Assembly: GCF_001447785.1 (NCBI RefSeq)
Contig: NW_015175421.1
Coordinates: 1-64,000, forward strand
From: Gekko japonicus
Taxonomy: Eukaryota
Direction of reading: 5' to 3'
Length of the DNA: 64,000 bases
Shown here: piece by piece, positions 4,871 to 56,974 of the stretch
Position numbering within the stretch: the first letter of the stretch is position 1
Layout: each line of letters opens with the position of its first letter
Program-made: the position numbers and the translations under genes
The notes under the pieces: model-generated
The model's input: the letters and a program-made list of their open reading frames with translations, nothing else
Told to the model about the DNA's origin: nothing
Database searches by the model: none

Positions 4871-5827
4871 CTAGAGAGATGGTGGCGTTTTGAGACCGAG
4901 CACCCGTCTCATAGCCTCCTGCATTTCTTTATTCCTCAGGCAGTAGATGATGGGGTTCAGCGTTGGGGTCACCACATTGTAAAGCACAGAGGCCAGGGTG
5001 TCTAAATATGCAGGGTAACTGGAGCCAGGCCGGTTATAATTAAACATTCCACTGGTGAAGAACAAGGTGACCACTGTGAGATGGGAAGCGCAGGTGGAGA
5101 AGGCTTTGCGGCGACCCTGGGACGTTCGGATCCTCAAGACCGCCACGACAATATGAACGTAGGATAGCATGATGCAAAGAAAAGGGCTGACGCCAAGCAG
5201 CATGGTTACCACCACCAATGTCATTTGGTTGGGGAAAGTGTCTGCGCAAGAGAGCTTGAGCAACTGGGGGACATCACAGAACACGTGGTCCAGCTCGTGA
5301 GAGGCACAGAAGGGCACGAGAGAGGTCATGGCTGTGTGCAGGACCGAGTTGAGGAGGCCACAGACCCATGAGGCTGCCACCAACTGAGTGCACGATGTTT
5401 GGTTCATGAGGAGGGTGTACGTGAGGGGACGGCAGATGGCGACGTATCGGTCGTACGCCATCACGGCCAGCAGGAGACACTCGACTCCCACAAAGGCCAC
5501 CAGGAAGTAAAGCTGGGCCAGGCAGCCCTCGAAGGAGATGGCCTTGGACTCTGCCAACAAGTTTTTCAGCACGTGGGGCAGAGTGACCGAGGTGTAGCAC
5601 ATGTCCAGGAAGGAGAGATGCCGGATGAAATAGTACATGGGCGTATGCAGGCTGGAATCCAGGAAAGTGGTGGCCAGGATGAGGCCGTTTCCAAACAAGG
5701 TGGTGACGTACATGGTCAGGAACAAGACGAAGAACAGAGAATGGGGCTTGGGGAAATGGGAGAAACCCAGGAAGACAAATTCCCTGATTGCTGTTTGATT
5801 TCCCATCTGCTCCTGCCAGGATGACAT
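4871..5827 (-). CDS. Olfactory receptor (class II), intact single coding exon
   Basis: ORF has OR motifs LHTPMYYF, MAYDRYVAIC, KAFSTCASHL, PTLNPIIYCLRN and an N-terminal NQT glycosylation site. First ATG is at 5827 (MSSWQEQM), just after a CCCCATTTCAG acceptor; alternative ATG at 5806. Confidence 0.96.
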   Translation of the reverse strand: MSSWQEQMGNQTAIREFVFLGFSHFPKPHSLFFVLFLTMYVTTLFGNGLILATTFLDSSLHTPMYYFIRHLSFLDMCYTSVTLPHVLKNLLAESKAISFEGCLAQLYFLVAFVGVECLLLAVMAYDRYVAICRPLTYTLLMNQTSCTQLVAASWVCGLLNSVLHTAMTSLVPFCASHELDHVFCDVPQLLKLSCADTFPNQMTLVVVTMLLGVSPFLCIMLSYVHIVVAVLRIRTSQGRRKAFSTCASHLTVVTLFFTSGMFNYNRPGSSYPAYLDTLASVLYNVVTPTLNPIIYCLRNKEMQEAMRRVLGLKTPPSL

Positions 5828-20298: not shown

Positions 20299-21264
20299 AT
20301 GTCATCCTGGCAGGAGCAGATGGGAAATCAAACAGAAATAAGAGAATTTGTCTTCCTGGGTTTTTCTAACTTCCCGGAGCCCCATTCTCTGTTCTTCATC
20401 TTGTTCCTGACCATGTACGTCACCACCTTGTTTGGAAACGGCCTCATCCTGGCCACCACTTTCCTGGATTCCAGCCTGCATACGCCCATGTACTATTTCA
20501 TCCGGCATCTCTCCTTCCTGGACATGTGCTACACCTCGGTCACTCTGCCCCACGTGCTGAAAAACTTGTTGGCAGAGTCCAAGGCCATCTCCTTCGAGGG
20601 CTGCCTGGCCCAGCTTTACTTCCTGGTGGCCTTTGTGGGAGTCGAGTGTCTCCTGCTGGCCGTGATGGCGTACGACCGATACGTCGCCATCTGCCGTCCC
20701 CTCACATACACCCTCCTCATGAACCAAACATTATGTGCCCAGTTGGTGGTGGCCTTGTGGGTCTGTGGCCTCCTCAACTCAGTCCTGCACACAGTGATGA
20801 CCTCCCTCGTGCCCTTCTGTGCCTCTCACGAGCTGGACCATTTGTTCTGCGATGTCCCTCAGTTGCTCAAGCTCTCTTGCGCAGACACTTTCCCCAACCA
20901 AATCACATTGGTGGTGGTAACCATGCTGCTTGGGGCGAGCCCTTTCTTCTGCATTGTGGTTTCCTATGTCCATATTGTCATGGCGGTCTTGAGGATCCGC
21001 ACATCCCAGGGTCGCCGCAAAGCCTTCTCCACCTGTGCGTCTCACCTCACAGTGGTCACCTTATTCTACACCACTTGCATGTTTAATTATAACCGACCCA
21101 GTTCTAAGCACCCTGCATATATAGACACTCTGGCTTCTGTGCTTTACAATGTGGTAACCCCAATGCTGAACCCTATCATCTACTGCCTGAGGAACAAGGA
21201 AATGAAGGAGGCTCTCAAACGAGCGCTCAGCCCCAAAAAGTCACTGTCCCTGTGGCTCCAATAG
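20299..21264 (+). CDS. Olfactory receptor (class II), intact; close paralog of 4871-5827
   Basis: Same OR motifs (LHTPMYYF, MAYDRYVAIC, KAFSTCASHL, PMLNPIIYCLRN). ATG at 20299 follows the acceptor ccccatttcag (ending 20291). Confidence 0.96.
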   Translation: MSSWQEQMGNQTEIREFVFLGFSNFPEPHSLFFILFLTMYVTTLFGNGLILATTFLDSSLHTPMYYFIRHLSFLDMCYTSVTLPHVLKNLLAESKAISFEGCLAQLYFLVAFVGVECLLLAVMAYDRYVAICRPLTYTLLMNQTLCAQLVVALWVCGLLNSVLHTVMTSLVPFCASHELDHLFCDVPQLLKLSCADTFPNQITLVVVTMLLGASPFFCIVVSYVHIVMAVLRIRTSQGRRKAFSTCASHLTVVTLFYTTCMFNYNRPSSKHPAYIDTLASVLYNVVTPMLNPIIYCLRNKEMKEALKRALSPKKSLSLWLQ

Positions 21265-44135: not shown

Positions 44136-44669
44136 GGCTATCCTTCTTGATCTATCTTATACAATCCTGAAAGGGAAAATTGTGTGTGTGTGTGTGTGTC
44201 TTTGTGAATAGATAACCAGATCAGCAAGGTGAAGTGTTATTTATTTCGCATATTTTTATTCTGCCCTTCTTCCAAATAGATCAGGGCAAAGGTACATCAT
44301 TTTCCTTTCCTCAGTTTTACCTTCACAACAATAAGCCTTTGAGGTCGGCTAGACTGGGAAAGAGTGACCGGCCCAAGGACACCCATTGAGCTTCTGCAGC
44401 AGAGTGGGGATTTGAGCCTAGGTGAAGTGGGGTCTGACTCACAAAAGCTTATGATGGGGTAAATTTCATCAGTCTTCAGGGTGCCACCGGATCCCAGGTT
44501 TAGCTTTGCCTGGAACGATAACCACTGCTTAGCACCGTCTCATTCTGCCAGTTGAATGGGGGCTTCTCTTGATTTATCTGTTACATTCTTTAAAGATCCA
44601 TTTTCCAGTTTGTTTTCATACGCATGGATTGTACCTTTTTTGTTTTTCCAGGGCATAATAAAAGCAGAG

Positions 44670-45629
44670 ATGGAGACGACTAACGAGACCAGGGTGACCG
44701 AGTTTGAATTAGTTGGATTCCAGGATCTACAGCATTTTCACACGCTCCTCTTTGCCTCCTTACTTCTCACTTATTCACTCATTCTCCTGGGCAACACGGT
44801 CATCCTGTCCCTCATTCAGACCAGTCCCCGCTTCCATGTCCCCATGTACCACTTTATTGCCGTGCTGGCTACCCTCGAGATGTGCTATACCACCGTCACC
44901 ATCCCTAAGATGTTGGTGGATCTGCTGCAGAGGAAGAACCACATCTCTTTTGGGGGTTGCCTGGTGCAAATCTATTTCTTCCATGCCCTGGGCATCACAG
45001 AAGCCTGCTTGCTCACCGTGATGGCGTATGACCGCTACTTAGCCATCTGCACCCCATTGACCTATCCGTCCACCATGACAACCAAGCTCTGCTTGCGGCT
45101 AGTGGCCGGGTGCTGCATTTGTGGCTTTGCATGCCCTTTGCCTGAAATCATCCTGATTTCCAAACTCCCGTTCTGTGGGCCGAGTCGCATCAAGCATATC
45201 TTCTGCGATTTCCCTCCATTGTTTCATCTCCCTTGCGCTGACGTGTCCCGTATCGTCATGACAGACTTCATCATCCATTCCTCGGTCATCCTTGGTCCCG
45301 TCTTCCTGATCGTCCTCTCTTACGTCAAGATATTGACCGTCGTAGCCAAAATCCAGAGCCCTGAAGGCCGCCAGAAGGCCTTTTCTACCTGTGCTTCACA
45401 TCTCATTGTGGTTTTTGCCTTTTTCGGGACAACGGGGTTTATGTATGTCCGACTGACTCAATCCAGCTCCCTACAGTATGAGAGAGTCATTGCAGTGATC
45501 TATGCTGTCCTCACTCCTCTCTTCAACCCAGTTGTCTATAGCTTGAGAAACAAAGAGATTCAGGAAGAGATCAGAAAAATCACTAAGTGTCCCGGTCTGT
45601 CATTCAGGACAGTCATGCGGCTCAGATAG
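44670..45629 (+). CDS. Olfactory receptor, family 6 (OR6N/6K-like), intact
   Basis: METTNETRVTEF start after a polypyrimidine/CAG acceptor ending 44651. Motifs FHVPMYHF, MAYDRYLAIC, HIFCDFPPL, KAFSTCASHL, PLFNPVVYSLRN. The ORF-track start at 44556 is probably intronic. Confidence 0.95.
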   Translation: METTNETRVTEFELVGFQDLQHFHTLLFASLLLTYSLILLGNTVILSLIQTSPRFHVPMYHFIAVLATLEMCYTTVTIPKMLVDLLQRKNHISFGGCLVQIYFFHALGITEACLLTVMAYDRYLAICTPLTYPSTMTTKLCLRLVAGCCICGFACPLPEIILISKLPFCGPSRIKHIFCDFPPLFHLPCADVSRIVMTDFIIHSSVILGPVFLIVLSYVKILTVVAKIQSPEGRQKAFSTCASHLIVVFAFFGTTGFMYVRLTQSSSLQYERVIAVIYAVLTPLFNPVVYSLRNKEIQEEIRKITKCPGLSFRTVMRLR

Positions 45630-52810: not shown

Positions 52811-54742
52811 ACTATGACTACTCTAGTCTAGAAAACATGAAGGGAAAATGGGATTCACTTGGCTCTATAAGGTGGGAAGTCTCATTACATCAGCAGATGT
52901 GTGTTACCCAACTCTGATCGCTGGGAACAGGAATGCAGAGAAGGGTGGTAGAATCTTCTACTGGGCAGAACCATGGGGTCTCTCCTGCAATCGCAAAAGA
53001 CCAGCTTGGGGGGAGAATTGGCAAGAAGAAGATTGACAACCCTGATATTTTTGAACTGTGTGACCAAATCTAGCAACTGCAGGCTGGGGGTGGGGTGGGG
53101 TTATGTATTAATATATATTTTTATGCATTCATAAAAGCAAGATTGCACAGTTCACTCGAAACCTTGTTTGTTTGTTTTTAAAATGAAATCTGAGAATTCA
53201 AGTACCTGCTTTCCTTAATTGTGTGCTCTGGACACAAAGAATAGGAAGAAATTTCTGGAGCTCTGATATATATATTTTAAGACTTCCCTGTTGTACATTC
53301 TCCCCCTCACACACACACACACACAGACACACAACCTATGCTGTTTCTGCTTCGGGTCTGAGGAGATAAGGCGGGGTAGAAATATTCTGAATGAATTAAT
53401 ATGTGCTAAGGATTCTCAGATTATTTTGGAACTGTTGTGTTTGTTTGCATTATTTATTTAGACATTTTTGCCCCAGTTTCCCCCCGATGGAGAACCAAAG
53501 CGGCTTACAACATCATTCTCCTATCTCCCACCGCTCCTACAGGAGGTGGGGGTGGGTGGGCTGGCAACCCTTTATCCTCCATTTTGTCGACATGATGATG
53601 GCAACAAGATCCCCGTGAGGTTGGTTAGGTTGAGAGAGAGACAGTAGATGGCTCAAAGTCACCCAATGAGTTAGGGTTACCAACTCCTGGTTAGGAAATA
53701 TCTGGAGCTTTGGGGGTGGGGCCTAGGGAGAGTAGGGTTTGGGGAGGGGACGGACCTCAGCGGGGTATAATGCCATAGAGTTCACCCTCCAAAGCAGCCT
53801 CTCTTTATTTGCAGGGGAACTGATCTCTGTCGTCTGGAGATCAGTTGTAATTCAGGGAGCTCTCCAGGCCCCACCTGGAGGCTGGCAAGCCTAGTTAGGC
53901 AGATTGGGGATTTGAACCTGGGTCTCTCAGATCCTAGTGTGTCATACTAACCATTGTACCATCTCAGGGACACGGTCAAAGTCTCATAGGCAATTGAAAC
54001 CCGTGTCTGCTCATTTGCCAGAGTCCCGTCTTGTTTCATCTGGAGAAGTAGAACCCACCAATTCCACGTCAGTCACTGAATTTGAGCTGGTCGGTTTCCC
54101 GGTGTAACAGGCCGGATTAACCCCCCGGCCAGAGTAACCCCGGGGTTATTCTGGCCTAGCCTAGAATAACCCCGGAGGGGTTATTGAGGGGTTATTCTGG
54201 CCTAGCCTAGAGTAACCCCGGGTTAATCTGGCCGGCTGTAACAGGCCAGATTCACCCCCCCCCGGCCAGAGTAACCCCGGGCCTAGCCCAGAGTAACCCC
54301 TGCCAGGCCGGGCCAGAGTAACCCCGGGGGTTAGTCCAGACGGGGGGTTACTCTGGGCTAGCCTATACTAACCCCCACCTGGCCAGAGTGGTAAGTTAAA
54401 TGTCAGCTGAATCCAATCTCTTCTTCTTTTTAACTTATTTTTTTTTTAACTTCTTTTTAACTGCACAACACAACAACCTGTAACCCCGGGCTTAGTTGAG
54501 TGGTAACTTAGATGTCAGTGTAACCAGCACAGTGTCAGCTTCTGAGGGTTTCAGGTCCATGAGAAACTTGTCAGGCAATCTGAGATTCCTCTTGGTAGTG
54601 AAGAACAGGGTATGAATCCAATCTCATTAGTCAACAGACCCAAATATCAACAGTACTACGACTGACATTTCTTTGGAGAGCCAAATTTTTTAAACTTAAA
54701 CTATATAGGTAGGTACTTTGTTATTAACTTAATAATGGGACT

Positions 54743-54958
54743 CCTAGCAGTTCGAAAGCAAGAAATTACAAGTAGATAAATAGGGACCACTTTGGTGGGA
54801 AGGTAACAGCGTTCCGTGCGCCTTGGTGTTTAGTCATGCCGGCCACATGACCACGGAAACGTCTTCCGACAGCGCTCTTTGGCTTTGAAACGGAGATGAG
54901 CACCGCAACCCTAGAGTCGGATTCGACTGGCTTTCGAGCAAGGGAAACTTTTACCTTT
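54743..54958 (+). mobile_element. Sauria SINE (5'-truncated) nested in the Ginger-like element
   Basis: Reverse complement of the 39548 copy; ends in TTTTACCTTT. Confidence 0.85.
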
Positions 54959-55355
54959 AAGGCGGCCTTTGCTGAAAACGTCCTCGATCTGATTGAGGTA
55001 CGTTCACTGAAGTCGACCCCTTCCAACTCTCCCTTCCCTCTTTTTTTTTAAAAAAGGTTGCCCACAGCTTTAGATTAGAAAGAAAGAAAGAAAGACGGGA
55101 AGAGCATAGAGGGAGGGAGGGCAGTGAGACAGAAAGAGGGAAGAAAAAAGCAAAGCGGGAAAGCTGATTGACTTCAGTCTTAGAACTCTGCACACATAGA
55201 ATTTTATTACTTCAACCAGGAAAAAAACCAACAGTAAAAACATTAGACTTGATGTTCACTTAACTTAGCTGTCCATAATGTAATATAAGTCATAACATCC
55301 TGAAACTTCTACTTTGATGGCTACCAAGTACCCACAGAGATATAATTATTCAAAG

Positions 55356-56090
55356 CTAAACACTAATGACAACATCAAAATGATCATGCTTGTTTCCAAG
55401 ATAAAGTGCATGCTCTGTTGTTGACTGCAGATTGAAGCTTGCGGGATAGGTCAACCATTCCATGGAGTGACCAGCTTTTGTGTGGATGAGGATGTCGCAA
55501 CTCAGCAGATTCGCTGTGGCCATGATCTCTGCATCAGTTGCCCAGACTCCATCATGAGAGATGCCAGAAGTGCTCACATATTCACTCACATTCCGGTTCA
55601 AGTAGTCCTGTAGTTTCTCTGTCAAGTCAGTGTTCATGTGGTGGATGACTTTATTTCTAAGAAGGGAGTGGTTGTCCTCTGATCCTGTCAGGATGTAGCT
55701 GATGGCCCGGAAGTAGCAGTTCCCATCACCTTTGGTTTTATACATACGCCGTGGATGCCCAAGCTCCCTTGTGCGTCCACAGTACACAACCTTTACAAAT
55801 GAAAGGCCAAGAGTGGTGCTAAGATACTTTCTTACAGAACTTGGTAGTGGGTTGAAAGTCTTCATCTGCTGGCATCTCTGTGAGATGTTGATGTCATCAT
55901 TGTCTGGTCCCTCACATGGTCTTTTGAGTGTCTTCTGCTTCAGGCTGTCATTTGCAGAGTCACTAGGATAATCATCATGGGACTTGGCTGCCTTCCTTGG
56001 CCTGAGTCCTGTGAGTCTCTGGGTCAGGTTATAAGTGGGGTGCCCTCGGTATTGGGGCTTCCCAAGAGTAAAAGGCAGCGCCTCTGGCAA
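55356..56090 (-). CDS. OTU-family cysteine protease/deubiquitinase domain (transposon-encoded; C-terminal part of a Ginger1 transposase)
   Basis: Uninterrupted 244-codon frame with KGDGNCYFRAIS (catalytic Cys), VWATDAEIMATANLL and HDHFDVV (catalytic His). First in-frame ATG at 55865 would give 169 aa. Expression unknown. Confidence 0.8.
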   Translation of the reverse strand: MPEALPFTLGKPQYRGHPTYNLTQRLTGLRPRKAAKSHDDYPSDSANDSLKQKTLKRPCEGPDNDDINISQRCQQMKTFNPLPSSVRKYLSTTLGLSFVKVVYCGRTRELGHPRRMYKTKGDGNCYFRAISYILTGSEDNHSLLRNKVIHHMNTDLTEKLQDYLNRNVSEYVSTSGISHDGVWATDAEIMATANLLSCDILIHTKAGHSMEWLTYPASFNLQSTTEHALYLGNKHDHFDVVISV

Positions 56091-56788
56091 CAGAAGGTGG
56101 TTCTCTCTGGTTATTGGGGAAGTATCTCTCTCAGTAGGAAAAGACAGCAGCCCCAGAAAGCAGGCCTGGGGGGTTAATCTGGCCTGGGGGGTTATTCTAG
56201 CCTAGGCCAGAGTAACCCCGGGGTTTCTCTGGCCGGGGAGTGAATGGGAGGGTTACTCTGGCCGGGGGGTTAATCTGGCCTGTTACACCGGACCTGCAGA
56301 ATTTTCACAGGCCCATCTTTGTCATCTTGCTGGTGATTTACCTGCTTATCCTCAGCGGAAACAGCATCATCTTCACCCTCATCTATGCCCACCCCCACCT
56401 TCATATCCCCATGTACTATTTTGTCGCCATATTGGCTGTCCTGGAGGTCTTCTACACCACTGTCACCATGCCCAAGATGCTGGCCGACCTTCAGAAAAGC
56501 ACTCCATCCATCTCTCTCCATGGCTGCCTGCTGCAAATCTATTTCTTCCACTCGCTGGGGATCACAGAGGCTTGTTTGCTCACAGTCATGGCTTATGACC
56601 GGTACTTAGCCATCTGCACCCTGTTAAAATATTCCACCACGATGACCACCAAGCTTTGTTTCCAGCTAGTGCTGGGATGCTGCGCGTGTGGCTTCACTTG
56701 TCCTTTGCCGGAAGTCATCCTGACTTCCCAGCTGCCGTTCTGCGGCCCCAGTCGCATCAAGCACATGTTCTGTGATTTCCCTCCACTG

Positions 56789-56974
56789 AGGTACCACTTC
56801 AGTGGGAAGGTAACAACGTTCTGTGTGCCTTGGTGTTTAGTCATGCCGGCCACATGACCATGGAAACGTCTTCGGACAGCGCTGGCTCTTCGGCTTCGAA
56901 ACAGAGATGAGCACCGCAACCCTTGAGTCGGATTCGACTGGCTTTCCAGAAAGGGAACCTGTACCTTTACCTTT
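56789..56974 (+). mobile_element. Sauria SINE (5'-truncated) at the OR pseudogene breakpoint
   Basis: Matches the Sauria SINE 3' half; ends ACCTTTACCTTT. Confidence 0.85.

Follow-up and report, generated by a model that had tools for sequence, protein, structure and literature searches.

The new analysis indicates that the intact OTU deubiquitinase-like frame in the window, by which we mean the whole 64-kb stretch of DNA that was analysed, probably lies in a Ginger1 copy that is internally deleted and non-autonomous; this copy stems from a young, high-copy transposon family of a reptile and is inserted at a CCGG site in an olfactory-receptor exon. In full-length relatives, a single protein combines an N-terminal Gypsy-type integrase (an H2C2 zinc finger, a DDE core and an SH3/GPY-F module) with a C-terminal OTU domain. 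Here the integrase has been lost through a deletion near 55988, which brought the 5' non-coding region of the element up against the linker and the OTU part. Such a copy would be mobile only with integrase supplied in trans by an autonomous relative, and any OTU protein that it might yield would be made by accident. The likely reason why the OTU frame is intact is thus the youth of the copy rather than its upkeep as a separate gene.

The OTU frame sits in an element of 2185 bp at 54103-56287 which, judged by its ends and its target-site duplication, is a Ginger1 DNA transposon. Its parts are as follows, in positions of the window (TIR, terminal inverted repeat).

54099-54102: target-site duplication CCGG, left copy
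54103-54140, plus strand: left TIR, beginning TGTAA (TGTNR pattern)
54103-54390: left subterminal array of direct and inverted motifs of ~14-22 nt, on the 3' side in the sense of the gene
54525-54570, minus strand: remnant resembling the segment just past the integrase core (KLPMDL...), downstream of the OTU
54746-54964: SINE inside the 3' region of the element, lacking in other copies
55203-55208, minus strand: AATAAA polyadenylation signal, ~150 nt past the stop codon
55356-55865, minus strand: 169-codon OTU module and stop, the OTU core being preceded by a conserved N-terminal extension
55866-55987, minus strand: linker joining the SH3 tail of the integrase to the OTU, with a homologous linker in longer relatives
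55988-55990: internal deletion breakpoint, with the H2C2, DDE core and SH3 parts gone
55991-56160, minus strand: 5' region of the element, in which no coding homology was detected and which happens to be open in the OTU frame here
56160-56287: right subterminal repeats and TIR (the TIR being 56250-56287), on the 5' side in the sense of the gene
56288-56291: target-site duplication CCGG, right copy

The TIRs measure 38 nt, at the lower edge of the published Ginger1 range, or 42 nt with the CCGG, in which case the left one pairs with 56250-56291; they are 98% complementary, and TGTAA stands at both ends of the element. The terminal 22-mer occurs three times in the 64-kb window against 0 expected, each time at this element, and the subterminal motif families D1-D5 give 9 motif matches against 0.02 expected. 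A second, internal terminal 22-mer (TGTAACAGGCCAGATTCACCCC) is found at 54237-54258, ~134 nt inside the left end and with CCGGC before it; it could be either a duplicated terminus or part of a binding-site array. The 218-bp SINE is skipped by a 217-nt joint in contigs or reads of the sequencing runs X3, X22 and X23. In summed DNA depth it exceeds single-copy sequence ~4e5-fold, and it also predominates in RNA reads.

The frame itself is as an earlier note on this DNA had described it. On the minus strand, 55356-56090 comprises 244 codons without a stop, in which the GDGNC box (Cys codon 55716-55718, codon 125 of the frame) and the HFD box (His codon 55380-55382, codon 237) lie where they had been placed and the announced helix reads W-A-T-D-A-E-I-M-A. 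The ATG at 55865 opens a frame of 169 aa, as proposed, and the openness reported upstream extends to 56180, where the right subterminal repeats have their inner edge. The proposed OTU identity is likewise confirmed by the Pfam profile PF02338, with 46.7 bits against a cut-off of 23.3 (E = 5.7e-12). The 64-kb window contains 273 N, which were left as they stand.

The residues required of a cysteine protease of this type are in place. Specifically, the catalytic residues Asp47, Cys50 and His162 (169-aa numbering) are all present, each of them conserved in 90% or more of 66 homologues. Among solved structures, the closest in sequence is OTUD1 (4bop), with E = 4e-8 for the window sequence and E = 6.5e-13 for a profile built from the 66 homologues, and in the profile alignment the Asp-Gly-Asn-Cys and His motifs of the window fall on the DGAC motif and the catalytic His of OTUD5. 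The structure prediction that had been suggested as a check, run in AlphaFold2 on the 169-aa module with 66 homologues, returned an OTU fold (mean pLDDT 97.7, pTM 0.92), with a family-specific N-terminal extension of ~45 residues that is also confidently folded in the model. In a Foldseek comparison with the PDB, the top matches are all OTU domains (probability 1.0, TM 0.6-0.72, E down to 7e-9), the list including OTUD3, OTUD1, nairovirus vOTUs, OTUD5, OTUD2, A20 and yeast Otu1. These data support the identification of an OTU-fold cysteine protease domain with its catalytic residues in place. The OTU domain of the window copy looks catalytically competent, and, judged by its fold, in the full transposase it would presumably act as a ubiquitin or ubiquitin-like hydrolase during transposition.

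The relatives of the domain connect it to the transposase. A protein search without length limits returned 2214 proteins at E<=0.001, including many longer homologues in which the match is C-terminal and stands behind integrase domains. The 668-aa protein P0038 carries Integrase_H2C2, rve and OTU, and P0080, P0037, P0052 and P0063 are similar; P0030, P0036 and P0001 have an SH3 tail (GPY/F; SH3_Tf2-1) and an OTU. The closest proteins are 61-83% identical, hold the SH3 tail, linker and OTU in one frame and end at the window's own ...VISV stop, and the position of the native stop codon matches that in P0001 and P0004. A protein from Haliotis (abalone) was also matched, with 51% identity. This architecture supports the view that the OTU of the window is, by homology, the C-terminal domain of a Ginger1 transposase.

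At the DNA level, the relative used for comparison is L001, a 4858-bp JGI metagenome contig (Ga0056126_10003302) that holds an integrase tail, the linker and the OTU, with one in-frame stop. Its nucleotide identity is 82% across the linker, the OTU and the beginning of the 3' UTR. At its 3' end stands ...CTGTTACA, then CCGG; the terminal octamer and the CCGG target, seen in L001:1-2005, are common to it and the window element. L001 either derives from a related animal or gives a hint of horizontal spread. The contigs L002-L005, from the same sample series, are more distant OTU relatives. A further relative, P0174, comes from a Logan contig of another data set and is a predicted protein of 169 aa, 72% identical to the 169-aa module. 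It has a Met at exactly the start position of the module (MKTF...), where most other relatives have Thr or Ser.

The integrase, which the earlier note had taken to be lost, is indeed missing from the whole 64 kb. A tblastn search with five full-length or partial transposases finds matches only at 55374-55973, which is the OTU part. Since the integrase is absent both from the copy and from the entire window, the copy is non-autonomous. It thus lacks the integrase by which Ginger1 is recognized, and the homologues with the same OTU, which have H2C2, rve and SH3, place the family only. The DNA homology to L001 (81-82% identity) spans 55252-55990 and ends there. From the same organism, a 1146-nt contig aligns to 55222-55987 (3 differences, 1 gap) before going on for 379 unlike nt, and another same-organism contig matches 56092-55989, followed by 93 unlike nt. 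The divergence of these contigs at 55987 and 55989 indicates that longer forms exist and that the window copy is internally deleted at ~55988. The breakpoint at 55988-55990 is thereby given by two independent lines that agree, the end of the L001 homology and the same-organism contigs.

Upstream of the breakpoint, the idea that the first 64 codons are a true transposase N-terminus fused in frame was tried and rejected: BLASTP against the N-termini of P0038 and P0031 gave E values of at least 0.6, a self-comparison with shuffles gave no signal, and there are stops in this part in other copies. Specifically, these carry TAG stops at codons 11 and 14 of the upstream extension, the TAG alleles making up ~53% and ~25% of DNA depth and ~88% and ~72% of RNA reads, respectively. 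Given the missing transposase homology and the stops in other copies, the extension is open here by chance, and the ancestral coding sequence is only the part of the 244-codon frame from ~codon 37.

A short piece with integrase similarity does stand elsewhere in the element. The remnant at 54525-54570 is 84% identical to L001 370-412 over 43 nt (blastn, E = 3e-6), and 9 of its 15 amino acids are identical to the L001 ORF. It stands downstream of the OTU and the 3' region, outside the native order, which suggests a past rearrangement in the subfamily, for instance by template switching in gap repair. Because a same-organism contig runs across 54209-54716, this arrangement is not unique to the window copy.

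Copy numbers and private changes both speak to the age of the insertion. DNA depths were taken from run X1 of the same organism, in which summed contig depths are only rough copy numbers. The single-copy flanks have a depth of ~71-104, the OTU segment 21,000-95,000 and the termini 250,000-536,000, and one 112-nt contig identical to 55517-55628 of the window has a depth of 13,860. As an order of magnitude, the X1 depths correspond to OTU-bearing copies in the hundreds and ends in the thousands, many of them near-identical, and this combination of abundance and near-identity points to a recent burst. Most derivatives have lost the OTU, since termini outnumber the OTU segment 3- to 10-fold. An amplified deletion subfamily that retained the OTU is nevertheless possible, because hundreds of OTU copy equivalents are more than is usual for autonomous copies.

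Among the 40 best-supported of 253 differences, the window copy departs from nearly all others at at least 15 positions outside the SINE, a private divergence of at least 0.8%. In the ancestral coding part, the private changes within the same 40 of 253 differences are R59C and R73C in the linker, both of them non-synonymous CpG transitions, and none lies in the OTU core, which fits youth or constraint. Of all possible substitutions in the ORF, 4.05% make a stop, and the chance that a 732-nt frame stays unbroken is 0.74 at 1% divergence and 0.55 at 2%. With a chance of 0.74 of escaping a stop at 1% divergence, the intact frame requires no selection. Measured against L001, dN/dS is 0.19 for the OTU core (dS 0.48) and 0.23 for the 169-aa module, values that cover the transposase-borne history and not the time after the deletion; for the linker it is 1.34. 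From these ratios, the linker evolves neutrally, and the 0.19 of the OTU shows constraint on the domain while it rides in transposases. The very young insertion that had been offered as one of two readings of the intact frame therefore agrees with the near-perfect TIRs, the perfect target-site duplication, private differences of at least ~0.8% and the hundreds of near-identical OTU segments.

The flanks of the element are two halves of one olfactory-receptor exon, the left of which ends in ...TEFELVGFP at 54102. When the element and one CCGG are taken out, the flanks align without gaps with a paralogous receptor gene at ~44.7 kb in the window, so that the insertion is precise, with a 4-bp duplication. 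The window as a whole is an olfactory-receptor gene cluster, its genes marked by the motifs MAYDRY, KAFSTC and PMLNPxIY.

~4900-5800, minus strand: olfactory-receptor gene, by receptor motifs
20300-21200, plus strand: olfactory-receptor gene, by receptor motifs
44650-45560, plus strand: olfactory-receptor gene, by receptor motifs
54050-56790, plus strand: olfactory-receptor gene hit by Ginger1, by receptor motifs
56292-56790, plus strand: body of the disrupted olfactory-receptor exon (Pfam 7tm_4, E = 2.9e-30)

The receptor hit by Ginger1 seems to be without an ATG ahead of ...EPTNSTSVTEF, and a second SINE copy at ~56790-56960 in the gene body ends the receptor frame after ...FCDFPPL. In view of the apparent lack of an ATG and of the SINE, this receptor is a pseudogene with at least two transposable-element insertions. 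The Ginger1 copy either knocked out an olfactory-receptor gene or landed in one, and the insertion accordingly records the death of such a gene by transposable elements or a landing in it. Just to the left of the receptor gene, 53700-53930 is occupied by a very abundant repeat with a DNA depth of up to 6e6 and good RNA-seq coverage.

Expression data are available from the RNA-seq runs X22 and X23 of the same species, of which 3-12% of the raw reads were sampled; the equal orientation of mates indicates that both are unstranded. Over the ORF, X22 has a depth of 16-95 reads. The ratio of RNA to DNA depth is ~2-9e-4 over the ORF, as compared with 2.2e-4 for both the SINE and an unrelated repeat in the flank, and zero reads fell on the unique flank in the 3-12% of X22 and X23 reads. 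The RNA level of the ORF is what passive co-transcription of repeats or trace DNA in the libraries would give. The search for an OTU transcript that had been proposed as a check thus yielded an unstranded RNA signal at repeat background. The context of the ATG at 55865 is weak (C at -3, A at +4), and seven out-of-frame ATGs with short ORFs precede it. As regards a transcript and a translation start of its own, then, a stand-alone gene would have background RNA, a weak ATG and an upstream frame that is broken elsewhere. In X3, a small run labelled 'RNA?', 56063-56846 is covered continuously with zero differences at a depth of ~13-29, and the left flank is almost bare. This could reflect enrichment in the library, for open chromatin or otherwise, or read-through RNA, and the right-flank coverage of X3 was not counted as evidence of transcription.

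These observations bear on whether the OTU has a function apart from the transposase. The earlier note had also entertained a non-autonomous subfamily that spreads a stand-alone deubiquitinase, as anti-silencing cargo or raw material for domestication. This proposal gained no support and is unlikely, as neither a usable start context, nor a conserved upstream frame, nor RNA above background was found, and nothing found here shows expression or selection of the OTU leftover as a protein of its own. One form of the idea is that an OTU-only Ginger1 subfamily was amplified because its protease, made in trans, strips transposition or silencing factors of ubiquitin or a ubiquitin-like modifier and thereby favours copies that keep the OTU. 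The hundreds of copy equivalents of the OTU segment would fit such a history, as would a domain that is structurally perfect in the model with its catalytic residues intact, the retained native stop and downstream AATAAA, an ORF RNA coverage that is low but stems from several copies, and P0174, whose ORF in another lineage also has 169 aa and starts at the same position. A protein that acts in trans, however, confers no advantage in cis on its own source copy, the translation signals are poor, the RNA is at repeat background, the visible private changes are non-synonymous, and with termini at 3-10 times the OTU segment most derivatives have lost the OTU, so that we regard this explanation as unlikely. 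The fuller version, a recently active squamate Ginger1 family with an amplified subfamily that codes only for a catalytically intact OTU deubiquitinase, made in the germline and working in trans to aid integrase-mediated transposition or to blunt ubiquitin-dependent host silencing, would be quite improbable. If it were true, the OTU-only subfamily could be compared, as an element with 'protease cargo', to the KI-MULEs of plants, which carry ULP1.

Incipient domestication as a host gene, with a stand-alone deubiquitinase expressed from this very locus, is far harder to reconcile with the data and must be considered highly improbable. The 169-aa module is intact, and the right junction is spanned without any difference by contigs of X3, a run of uncertain library type; yet intact TIRs and the target-site duplication still flank a copy that lies within a dead olfactory-receptor exon, is without a promoter or good start context of its own, has zero RNA-seq reads on its unique flank, shows private non-synonymous CpG decay and is one of hundreds of similar copies. 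The chance that the element is autonomous after all, with its integrase elsewhere in the element, spliced or in another frame, is close to negligible. Some Ginger1 genes have introns (PMC2836005), and the 15-aa remnant at 54525-54570 resembles the segment behind the integrase core. Against this, the five transposases match the OTU part only in tblastn, which effectively refutes the proposal; the 2185 bp, including the 218-bp SINE, are too short for a transposase of ~550-690 aa; and close relatives carry SH3, linker and OTU in one continuous frame. The reading as a deletion derivative of a young Ginger1 family thus remains the preferred one.

For the OTU itself, this reading changes little, as such a leftover is expected of a young deletion derivative. 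The Ginger1 family behind the window copy, by comparison, looks recently active and very abundant in a reptile. According to Frith 2022, Ginger1 had previously not been found in sarcopterygians, with only relics in alligator, turtle, coelacanth and frog (PMC9004415), and the genes GIN1 and GIN2 are the vertebrate legacy of Ginger1 (Kojima 2018; Bao 2010, PMC2836005). In the literature searched, with Repbase and Dfam outside its scope, amniote Ginger1 appears only as ancient relics (PMC9004415) or as the domesticated GIN1 and GIN2. An amniote Ginger1 that is alive today, or was until recently, would offer a useful system. Copies with and without integrase, together with RNA data, could tell whether the OTU of Ginger1 and Helitron elements is needed in cis, acts in trans or is dispensable.

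Among known systems, the cellular and viral OTU deubiquitinases (OTUD1, 4bop; OTUD3, 4bou; OTUD5, 3tmo; nairovirus vOTUs) have their fold in common with the window domain, and their Asp-Gly-x-Cys and His motifs align with it. Sequence identity is only 16-24%, however, and the N-terminal extension of ~45 residues is the window family's own. The window OTU is furthermore part of a transposase, whereas OTUD1, OTUD3, OTUD5 and the vOTUs are host or viral proteins.

For the idea of protease cargo, the closest precedent is a group of plant elements. The Kaonashi (KI) MULEs of Arabidopsis, an account of Hoen and colleagues from 2006, reportedly carry ULP1-like protease genes without a transposase, and are said to show transcription and signs of selection across many copies. 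Like the window copy they are non-autonomous, and they keep only a ubiquitin-like-specific cysteine protease, but they belong to a different superfamily and their protease is a different clan member (Ulp1 as opposed to OTU); transcription and selection across copies of the kind described for them have no shown counterpart in the window element. Animal Helitrons are a second case of a DNA transposon that carries an OTU protease, as in the family of the window element (OTU domains in animal Helitron proteins, cited in PMC2836005). Their enzyme is a Rep/helicase and not a DDE integrase, and the ends and target-site duplication of the window element are of the Ginger1 and not of the Helitron type.

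The nearest counterparts are other Ginger1 elements, whose hallmarks are a GC-rich 4-bp target-site duplication (CCGG in 75%), TGTNR termini and TIRs of 40-270 bp (Bao et al. 2010, PMC2836005). Their transposase consists of an N-terminal Gypsy-like integrase of ~400 aa (YPYY, H2C2, DDE, GPY/F) and a C-terminal OTU or Ulp1 domain; OTU-bearing members are known from Hydra, Aplysia and aphid, and non-autonomous copies with the same ends have been described (PMC2836005). The OTU-type elements Ginger1-1/2/3/11_HM of Hydra and Ginger1-1_AC of Aplysia share the CCGG target-site duplication, the TGTNR termini and TIRs of ~40 nt with the window element, and they carry their OTU C-terminally behind a Gypsy-like integrase, as do the relatives of the window element. 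In comparison with these Hydra and Aplysia elements, the window copy stands out by its reptile host and by a coding region from which the integrase is wholly gone and in which only the linker and the OTU are kept.
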